64,000 nt of DNA from Glycera tridactyla (GCA_965644265.1 OZ286459.1:128154001-128218000); one strand, 5' to 3'. Numbered from the stretch's first letter, positions 48,401 through 51,400 are shown. Notes: generated by a model not told the origin, from the sequence alone. Program-made: numbers and translations.

Positions 48401-51400
48401 TTCTGATGCAAGCAATATACCATTATATCACACTGCTGCATATCACATCACATGACACATTGTGAAGGACAAAAAAGTATAGAATGTGCAGGAGTAAACC
48501 ACAACAAGTGACAGAAGACTAAAATCGACAACAAAATAGTACTAGTAGTACAAACAATATTTCCAAACAAAATCATAATATACCATAATCTGAGAAAAAC
48601 CAGATACTATCAGAAGATGCATGCAAAATGTGTATTTAACAGTATCATCACAGTCTAGAAAAACTGTTGAGCAGATGAAGAATTGAATGAATCAACTAGC
48701 TCTATTTGATAATCATCAGAAATTTGAACCGGCTGTGAATACGAATTCAGAGTTCAAAATCGTATCATCAATCAGTCACTGAAATCGCAATTTTCTACTA
48801 GTGATGAATAAATGTAGGAAAAGTTAAAAAAGAAGTGGAAGAAGTAAGAGATAATGGAAAATGTTTATTGACTGATGATTTTACATACATGTAGTGAACA
48901 TCAGTCGCTTGCAGATCTATCTGATTGCCTTTTACCCAGCCCTTGACGAAGATATCACTCATTTTCTCACCAGAGAAAAAAGAATCGTCTTCCAAGATGA
49001 CGTCATCAGTGTTCCAAATGATGCACCTCAACTCATAGCTACCATGCAAAACAATAAGACACCGGTACAACGATGCTAACAGGGATGTGCTAACACAAGT
49101 GGTGGTGCCTCATACATTGGTTAAAGCCATTTCTGTTTACATACATGTAGTGAATATCAGTACATTGAACGTCTACTTGATTGCCCTTCACCCAGCCTTT
49201 CACGTAGATGTCACTCATTTTCTCCCCTGAGAAGAAAGCGTCGTCCTCTAGAATGACGTCGTCTGTATTCCAAATGACGACCCGTAATTCATAGCTAGTA
49301 CAAAAAACAACAGTCCAAAACAACAGTGCCAGAATGTCTCTGAAATATTCTTCTTTACTTGGTCGCGTTTTCTAGTTCAATGTGTTTGATATAATGATCA
49401 TAGACACAGGCATCTAAAATGGAGATCATAGACACAGGCATCTAAAATGGAATATTTCGGATGGGATCATTACAATTTCAATTGTATCATCTGTCAAATT
49501 TCATTACATTTGTACTATGGACTATATTGGATATAAATGTAGGCATGTGAGGGCTCCAGATAGTCAATTTAGGACATGATAATAAATCATAAGAATGATC
49601 CAGAAATATTATAATGCTCAAGACATATTTGTGAGAGATGTTTGTCTGATATCACATAATTCCAACTTGACACTAATGAAATGTCCAAAACAACAATGCC
49701 AGAATGTCTGTGAAATATTCTACTTTACTTGGCCACGTTCGCTAGTTCAATGTGTTTGATTTAGTGATCATAGACACAGGCATTTAAAATGGAGATCATA
49801 GACACAGGCATCTAAAATGGAATATTTCGGATGGGATCATTACAATTTCAATTGTATCATTTGTCAAATTTCATTACATTGGTATTACGGACTATATTGG
49901 ATATAAATGTAGGCATGTGAGGCCTCCAGATAGTTAATTTAGGACATGATAATAAATCATAAGAATGATCCAGAAATATTATAATGCTCAAGACATATTT
50001 GTGAGAAATGTTTGTCTGATATCACATAATTCCAACTTGACACTAATGAAATGAGGACTGAATAATGAGGAAACTGAGATCTTGATACCTTGCTCAGATC
50101 ACGCGATGCAAGACACAACTCAAAGTTCTGTTGATATCACCATGTACTGAATCTTATCATCATTATGCTGCTGTAGGAATGTTCCTATTACAGCAAATTG
50201 TCTCCAAGGGGAGTCGATTCTCCTCAATATATTTCAACTATGAGTGTTTATTTCGATTTATTACAGCTGAAGTTTTATTTGAAGAAACTGTTTGCCTCAA
50301 TATTGCATATAGTGTCTTATTCTAAATGAAAGAACACCCGGACCCATCCGGACTAACTGCTTACCTTTTAGGTTTGCGTGGTGATATGTCAACAGGTGGA
50401 CCTGGCGCAGGCATATCCATAGGGAACAAATCAACAAACATCTCGATTTTACCCTGAAAAACCAAAACTTCTTATATTTACGACAGGTACAAGCAGGGTG
50501 TACTGATCCCGATTCAGAATATGGCTAATCTTCCACATTGAGCATGAGAAAGCAGCATGTGCTAGAAATCATCAACTCTAGGTTTTTCCCAAAAAGTTCG
50601 ATACATCACAGCACATTCTAGAATTTCTCATGAATGAATGATGACTGTGCTTTTTTAAAACACCCAAACGAATATACTACATCTTACAAAATTGGGATGC
50701 ACCCCCTATATGAAGCTCCACATTGTACGTATTAAGACATCGATATATTTTTTGCACATGCGATCTGTCAAATTATCCATGAATTATTTGCTGGACCTCA
50801 CTCCCCTGAGGTTGAAGAATACCATACATCCCAGTATATATTCATAACATTTTAGTGCAACAATGATTTAGACAAATCTTGTAGCAAGCATATGTTACAG
50901 TATCGGAATGACACCAAGAGTATAATCACGTACCTGTTCGATACCTGGCTTGTCAGGGTTATAAAGTGGTCTAGTTTCTACATGCTCTGGTACCAGTTTA
51001 CATCCAACTTTCGGAATTTCATCCCAGTGCTGAAGTACCGCCAATGCCTGTTGTTCTTCAGCAGCTTTTTTCCCTGGATAAAACAAATAAAGTATCTACA
51101 TACCAATTTATATATATTTCACAGAAATCTTTCAGTCTCATTCATCACAATGCTTGTTACCACAAAACCATCAATTGGTCATGGGTTGTGAGATGAATCA
51201 GTAGAAACTAGACAATGATCAACTGGATCATGAAAATTGACAGATTATTTGGAAATAATCATTTCTGCTTAGATTTTCCCAAAGATTAAACAATTGAATT
51301 GTGAGCCTTTCCAGAGATATCAGAAACTCTTGGTTTCTGTCCATGGATTTGGATGTTATCGCACAATGATGTGTCTCGCCAATGAATACAATCTTTGTGC

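Follow-up and report, generated by a model that had tools for sequence, protein, structure and literature searches.

In the analysed stretch of the Glycera tridactyla genome (GCA_965644265.1 OZ286459.1:128154001-128218000; 64,000 nucleotides (nt), hereafter the window, with positions counted from its first letter), a gene on the minus strand contains two adjacent copies of one coding exon, A and then B, in the last C2 domain of a predicted ferlin. Features of the predicted protein identify the gene as an otoferlin-type ferlin. The Ferlin_C domain (PF16165) was detected in exons 43879-43589, 42938-42753, and 36138-35923 (best match 3.3e-13, above the curated cut-off), and the last exon of the gene ends in a single transmembrane anchor. 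A C2 domain (PF00168, 5.8e-7) and a dsrm_Ferlin domain (PF22901, 6.8e-15) are encoded at 57772-57506 and 56408-56154, respectively; the N-terminal part of the gene falls outside the window. When exon A was compared with solved structures, otoferlin was the best match (2.3e-19), ahead of myoferlin (2.1e-14) and dysferlin (1.7e-12). The last ferlin C2 domain is named C2G in the current structure-based nomenclature (PMC12526402), C2F being its older name.

Exon A (49294-49145, minus strand) and exon B (49038-48889, minus strand) are each 150 nt long, code for 49 residues, and are separated by an intron of 106 nt (49144-49039, minus strand; U2-type GT..AG as read from the sequence). Both have the same phase, the first base completing the upstream codon and the last two bases opening the next one. 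Their acceptors read ...tactag/C and ...tggtag/C, that of exon A being T-rich, and their donors are the same, a 17-nt string formed by CACTACAT at the exon end and GTATGTAAA at the intron start, so that both introns begin with GTATGT. Equal length and phase, AG acceptors, and identical donors are the features of a tandem exon pair. The basic anatomy of the pair had been described in an earlier note, which was made from the sequence alone and proposed the copies as mutually exclusive exons; its coordinates proved exact. The pair was also picked up independently by a repeat search of the window (family D2), and a tblastn search of the window found no third exon copy.

The two exons are identical at 117 of 150 nucleotides (78%; 33 differences) and differ at 8 of 49 residues (V5C, V6I, A19S, Y30F, V40I, V42L, C44A, and I47V). 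Outside the exons, the nine intronic donor bases are identical and the remaining intron sequence could not be aligned; the 60-nt flanks match at 20/60 and 23/60 positions, the second figure taking in the 9-nt donor. The likeness between A and B is restricted to the exon and far above chance.

Transcript evidence came from contigs of two runs (X1 and X2) of one study, the only runs found to contain this gene, compared with positions 44650-50550 at a k-mer depth of 11-15. A contig of 2472 nt from one run and another of 6253 nt from the other cover 50456-50365, 49038-48887, and 44872-44681, with no mismatch in exon B or in the upstream-exon pieces and one mismatch in the downstream exon of X2. 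In both runs, the joint 50365->49038 skips 1326 nt including all of exon A, and the joint 48889->44874 removes the 4014-nt intron downstream of B (44875-48888, minus strand); both have GT..AG on the gene strand, which for the second reads CT..AC on the plus strand. The runs are labelled only as probable RNA, and these intron-free GT..AG joints indicate that the contigs derive from complementary DNA (cDNA). Exon B is expressed with A skipped in the sampled transcriptome. Among the five junctions that the earlier note had named for such a check, these two were thus seen, whereas the two that would join exon A to its outer neighbours (50365->49294 and 49145->44874) were not. Its expectation that the copies are not included together agrees with the absence of the fifth, 49145->49038, from the contigs of either run. 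Forms with A only, with A plus B, or with neither exon (50365->44874) were not seen in the contigs of the two runs; since depth is low and minor isoforms are lost in contigs, silence of A cannot be concluded from this.

Comparison of the coding sequences shows that both copies are old and have been constrained as protein. By Nei-Gojobori counts, the proportion of synonymous differences (pS) is 0.82, which is saturated, and that of nonsynonymous differences (pN) is 0.087, so that the synonymous-nonsynonymous comparison proposed for the pair points to purifying selection on the protein in both copies. In 50,000 trials in which 33 differences were placed at random on B, residue changes averaged 21.8 and never fell below 13, against the 8 observed (P < 2e-5), and about 70% of trials gave a stop, which neither copy has. 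Synonymous divergence beyond saturation indicates an old duplication, neutral sequence having been randomised, as the flanks show, and it also excludes recent gene conversion as the source of the conservation of A. Relative to the single-copy exon of two other invertebrates, pN is 0.073-0.077 for A and 0.10-0.15 for B; A19, Y30, and I47 of exon A are the common states elsewhere, while S19, F30, and V47 of exon B are derived. The worm pair is a real, old, and selectively maintained tandem exon pair.

This evidence bears on how the absence of exon A from the contigs should be read. One possibility is that A, once an alternative exon, has lately ceased to be used and is always skipped, B now being constitutive, which agrees with the presence of B alone in the contigs, in which 49145-49294 is uncovered in both runs. 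We regard it as unlikely, since A shows no decay: its frame is intact, its acceptor is T-rich, it shares the 17-nt donor string, and its pN is lower than that of B, so that any silencing would have to be very young compared with the pair itself. Judged by its intact frame and by purifying selection, A is not a relic; we conclude that it has been translated through most of its history and very probably still is today. Another possibility is that A has been retained for a non-coding role, as a decoy exon or splicing-regulatory element controlling B, and is never translated. Its identical extended donor could serve as a competing 5' splice site and A is unseen in mRNA, but the differences are distributed over the three codon positions as 9/3/21, and only 8 residue changes for 33 nt speak of selection on the protein. 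This third-position bias excludes a purely RNA-level role, and we consider retention without translation very improbable.

To locate the differing residues, the 49 residues were aligned without gaps to mouse otoferlin and compared with the Ca2+-binding and membrane residues listed for that protein (PMC12526402). In the mouse structure, determined by cryo-electron microscopy, C2G binds three Ca2+ ions via E1742, D1743, and D1754 of the top loop L1 and via residues of L3, and F1746 and F1747 (L1) and Y1775 (L2) insert into or approach the membrane (PMC12526402). The register is exon position plus 1726, so the exon spans mouse residues 1727-1775 and provides the last C2 domain with beta-1, all of top loop L1, and the strands as far as the L2 tyrosine, which bears out the previous assignment to the first strands and loop 1 of that domain. 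E16, D17, D28, F20, F21, and Y49 correspond to the Ca2+ and membrane residues given above, and all are retained in A and B; the acidic loop residues had already been described as kept in both, and E16, D17, D18, and D28, together with F20 and F21, are indeed common to the two copies. Position 19 (A/S; mouse D1745) lies between the Ca2+ ligands and the two membrane-inserting phenylalanines, and position 30 (Y/F; mouse F1756) lies two residues past the Ca2+ ligand D1754. Positions 40 and 42 flank the invariant D41, which is the equivalent of mouse D1767, the pachanga residue. If there is a functional shift between the copies, it may concern Ca2+ or lipid binding, as the earlier note proposed.

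We searched for relatives of the pair with a protein short-fragment search, a search of representatives at 50% identity, and a scan of metagenome contigs of the Joint Genome Institute (JGI). An interval was counted as covered when the upstream exon, this exon, and the downstream exon lay on one contig, which was the case for 52 loci, 48 of them non-vertebrate. The exon is single-copy in all 48 of these non-vertebrate ferlin loci, among them loci of gutless oligochaetes, termite-gut (insect) contigs in which a further intron follows VKG, and contigs that lack introns and are probably transcript-derived. Elsewhere the exon codes for 48 residues, whereas A and B each code for 49 and share VIL, FFSG, and NQxD. 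The signature KGNQxDxQ of the window was present in none of 236 fragments of other animals retrieved by the short-fragment search with the open reading frame around A, which thus included none from this species or a sister species, and no annelid with two copies was found among the 50%-identity representatives. Since the exon is single-copy in these 48 loci, the pair arose by tandem duplication in the lineage of this worm. Two flavours of the exon among invertebrates, V5/C44 and C5/S44, were considered as an ancient shared pair and rejected, as they are lineage variants of one exon.

Two further observations were made in these searches. A second ferlin paralogue occurs in gutless-oligochaete metagenomes (L060-L086, e.g., L072:8001-8147 and L082:8001-8147); it is single-copy, and its equivalent exon is 59-61% identical to A. 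In a gutless-worm contig (L016:144-366), the last 20 codons of the exon recur as a partial second copy 20 nt past it, and two fragments of other animals (P0041 and P0106) carry similar short repeats of the exon 3' end; these repeats could be donor-region duplications or assembly artefacts.

How the joining of A to B might be prevented was examined from the splice sites and flanking introns. Steric hindrance applies when the distance from the 5' splice site to the branch point is below about 50-60 nt. In the 106-nt intron the last internal AG lies at positions 68-69 and is followed by an AG-free zone (70-104), with a predicted branch point CTTAT at about position 90, 16 nt before the acceptor; the predicted branch distance of about 70-90 nt exceeds that limit, and steric hindrance is therefore not to be expected. 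Both donors are of the U2 type (GTATGT), so U2/U12 incompatibility does not apply. As had been pointed out, nonsense-mediated mRNA decay (NMD) cannot police double inclusion, because 150 nt is a multiple of 3 and both double inclusion and double skipping stay in frame. A windowed duplex scan of the A-B intron against the flanking introns gave 49113-49085 with 48383-48352 as the best pairing (-30.9 kcal/mol), an energy reached by 3 of 40 shuffles, and a repeat search of the window found only weak inverted repeats. The active exclusion mechanism that the earlier note took to be implied is thus not matched by any specific mechanism that the sequence supports, and regulated splice-site choice by trans-acting factors is our default guess.

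The same features leave room for the view that A and B are sometimes both included, which would give a C2 domain with a 50-residue internal repeat. Such a product is in frame, the 106-nt GT..AG intron with its likely branch point makes A-B splicing sterically possible, and several vertebrate gene models include both copies of a pair of their own (described below). Against this, the joint 49145->49038 is in neither run, a second beta-1, L1, beta-2, and beta-3 inside the beta-sandwich is unlikely to fold, and the vertebrate two-copy models are unreviewed predictions standing beside single-exon isoforms of the same genes; we hold the prospect of such double inclusion to be slight. Finally, an assembly artefact, in which two haplotypes or a collapsed repeat were placed side by side, can practically be dismissed: nothing specific favours it apart from a recent 370-nt tandem duplication in the neighbouring intron, whereas 22% of bases differ between the copies, their flanks are unrelated, alleles would not diverge so far, and independent RNA contigs agree with B and the exons on either side of it to within one mismatch.

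The survey of related species that had been suggested for the pair yielded, besides the single-copy non-vertebrate loci, a second pair at the same place in vertebrates. The earlier note knew of no such pair in vertebrate OTOF, yet it is present in shark, teleosts, and lizards, with isoforms of both kinds annotated, in many fish and in a lizard. In vertebrate otoferlin genes of shark, teleost, and lizard (loci L087:64857-65141, L088:10003-10419, L006:32509-32951, and L064:1693-2106), the 33 residues that open the last C2 domain are encoded by each of two tandem 99-nt exons, and the same arrangement was found in one vertebrate-like metagenome contig. The representative search had returned a model from the lizard Phrynosoma (KAH0622938.1) with two consecutive copies of these 33 residues, and in Phrynosoma genomic DNA these are separate 99-nt exons, each with its own splice sites, which are spaced by 245 nt and flanked by the neighbouring exons expected there; the shark copies are 87 nt apart. 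The single bird examined (L089) has only the first copy, in an interval without an assembly gap.

A region-restricted search listed 119 vertebrate otoferlins, which were sorted on the SDI[Y/F]V motif into type F (...DDD[YF]FTGEKSSDIFVRG), which is the first copy, and the alternative version, type Y. Type F was found in 91 of the 119 (including five two-copy models) and type Y in 28. The listed mammals, birds, and turtles have type F only, and type Y includes hagfish, Polypterus, an eel, many teleosts, and Podarcis. The five models with two consecutive copies have type F followed by type Y in four cases (Phrynosoma, Gekko, Nibea, and Coregonus). In turbot and Myripristis, a single gene has isoforms that agree except in blocks of alternative sequence and that differ here by exactly the F/Y swap. 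Among shark, teleost, and lizard, pN is 0.013-0.05 within a type and 0.15-0.19 between types. Type Y is only 2-3 residues (of 33) from the invertebrate single-copy exons and type F is 7-9, so that the mammalian form is the derived one. Nothing useful on type Y spliced to the next exon was obtained among 120 listed fragments. No paper describing the vertebrate F/Y pair was found in the literature, where the tandem duplication reported for OTOF is that of the 3' anchor exons. Further interest comes from this separately evolved and apparently undescribed pair at the same spot in non-mammalian vertebrate otoferlin.

The worm and vertebrate pairs affect the same gene family, the same domain, and the same segment (beta-1 plus L1), both as adjacent in-frame copies with their own splice sites, each copy under purifying selection. 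In each there is one ancestral-like copy (A in the worm, type Y in vertebrates) and one derived copy, and both pairs differ at residue 19 (A versus D or S; mouse D1745) and residue 30 (Y versus F; mouse F1756). On the other hand, the vertebrate unit is a 99-nt exon ending after VRG, whereas that of the worm is a 150-nt exon whose copies differ in the second half too; the order is derived then ancestral in vertebrates and ancestral then derived in the worm; B differs from A at 4 of 33 residues and from type F at 7-9; and F20/F21 and M26 are swapped in the vertebrate pair but unchanged between the worm copies. Orthology of the two pairs was rejected on exon size, reversed order, these distances, and the single-copy state in the sampled invertebrates; they are independent duplications. 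The change at positions 19 and 30 in both is suggestive of convergence.

Taking all these results together, we consider mutually exclusive, one-at-a-time use of A and B to be the best reading (probability about 0.7), since double inclusion would repeat four structural elements in one beta-sandwich and was not seen in the RNA. Of the exclusivity proposed in the earlier note, the use of B without A is observed, while A alone was not seen and the case for exclusivity is argued from selection. Under mutually exclusive use, an old tandem duplication of a 150-nt exon in the worm lineage would have given copy A, which kept the ancestral sequence, and copy B, which diverged (A to S and Y to F). The mature mRNA would carry either A or B as versions of one otoferlin-type coding exon, each version supplying beta-1, the whole of L1, and the following strands of C2G. 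Version A would presumably be chosen in cells, tissues, or stages other than those sampled, and the last C2 domain of the A form would bind Ca2+ or membrane slightly differently. This whole account, with alternative versions of one exon, one per mRNA, of which B was sampled and A is used elsewhere with slightly different binding, is also probable.

Several points weigh on the other side. Exon A is in no transcript contig of the two runs, at the depth given above and in contigs of a kind that drops minor isoforms. Neither the splice-site reading nor the duplex scan makes an exclusion mechanism visible in the sequence. No relative sharing the same pair was found among the fragments, the representatives, or the JGI metagenomes, so that conservation lends no support to the two copies as a unit. 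Six of the eight residue differences are conservative (V/I, V/L, I/V, Y/F, and A/S), so any functional shift may be modest. Chance could also account for the positional overlap with the vertebrate pair (2 of 4 against 5 of 33), for which the hypergeometric P is about 0.10.

With regard to the surroundings of the pair, the constitutive upstream exon (50365-50456, minus strand) is 92 nt long and codes for 29 residues plus the first two bases of a Ser codon; it is present in the X1 and X2 contigs without mismatch. The intron between it and A (49295-50364, minus strand) has no RNA coverage. The constitutive downstream exon (44681-44874, minus strand), represented by contig pieces at 44681-44872 and matching the Pfam C2 domain, codes for the L2 and L3 loops of the last C2 domain. 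The recent 370-nt tandem duplication (two copies, 95% identity) occupies 49313-50053 in the intron upstream of A; it was considered as a source of decoy splice sites and rejected, as it ends about 18 nt short of the acceptor of A and does not copy the splice site. A minisatellite with about 13 copies of a 42-nt unit lies at 44051-44612, in the intron directly downstream of exon 44874-44681, and long (CA)n/(TG)n microsatellites are found in introns of the ferlin gene at 60228-60467 and 61811-62125. Within the 4014-nt intron, about 55 nt at 45265-45322 are matched at 90-95% by approximately 190 and 160 contigs of the two RNA runs, with a summed depth of about 15,000; this segment is a piece of an abundant expressed repeat, and no tRNA-like gene was found in it.

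Beyond the worm gene, the two pairs might be read together. The L1 loop of the last ferlin C2 domain could be a recurrent two-setting switch, in which independent duplications each leave one ancestral copy (A19, Y30) and change the second at the same two positions, beside the membrane-inserting phenylalanines and just past a Ca2+ ligand, the settings differing in Ca2+ or membrane binding as required by different cell types and mammals and birds having kept the derived one only. We put this forward tentatively and think it rather doubtful. If it were true, the otoferlin so far studied in mammalian hair cells would be the derived form and not the ancestral one. Ca2+-triggered exocytosis in hair cells requires the last C2 domain of otoferlin, whose L1 and L3 loops bind three Ca2+ ions and enter the membrane (PMC12526402). 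A natural pair of L1 versions can be compared directly to learn which residues of this loop govern its behaviour towards Ca2+ and lipids. The vertebrate pair, moreover, touches a human deafness gene, and many non-mammalian vertebrates still possess its ancestral-like version as an alternative exon.

Two other known systems may be compared with the worm pair. In the well-studied classical clusters of mutually exclusive exons, the exclusion has been traced to competing RNA structures, steric hindrance, U2/U12 incompatibility, or NMD (PMC9013439, PMC6071210), whereas none of these mechanisms is supported for the worm pair; like it, the classical clusters consist of adjacent homologous exons of equal length and phase that are ancient and both conserved. 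In human OTOF, homologous alternative 3' coding exons for the membrane anchor substitute for one another as products of a tandem duplication, and pathogenic variants occur in both (PMC8373072). This human pair belongs to the same gene family and is likewise a swap of a homologous segment derived from tandem duplication, but it concerns the C-terminal transmembrane exon and a choice of terminal exon, whereas in the worm the swapped segment is part of a C2 domain.

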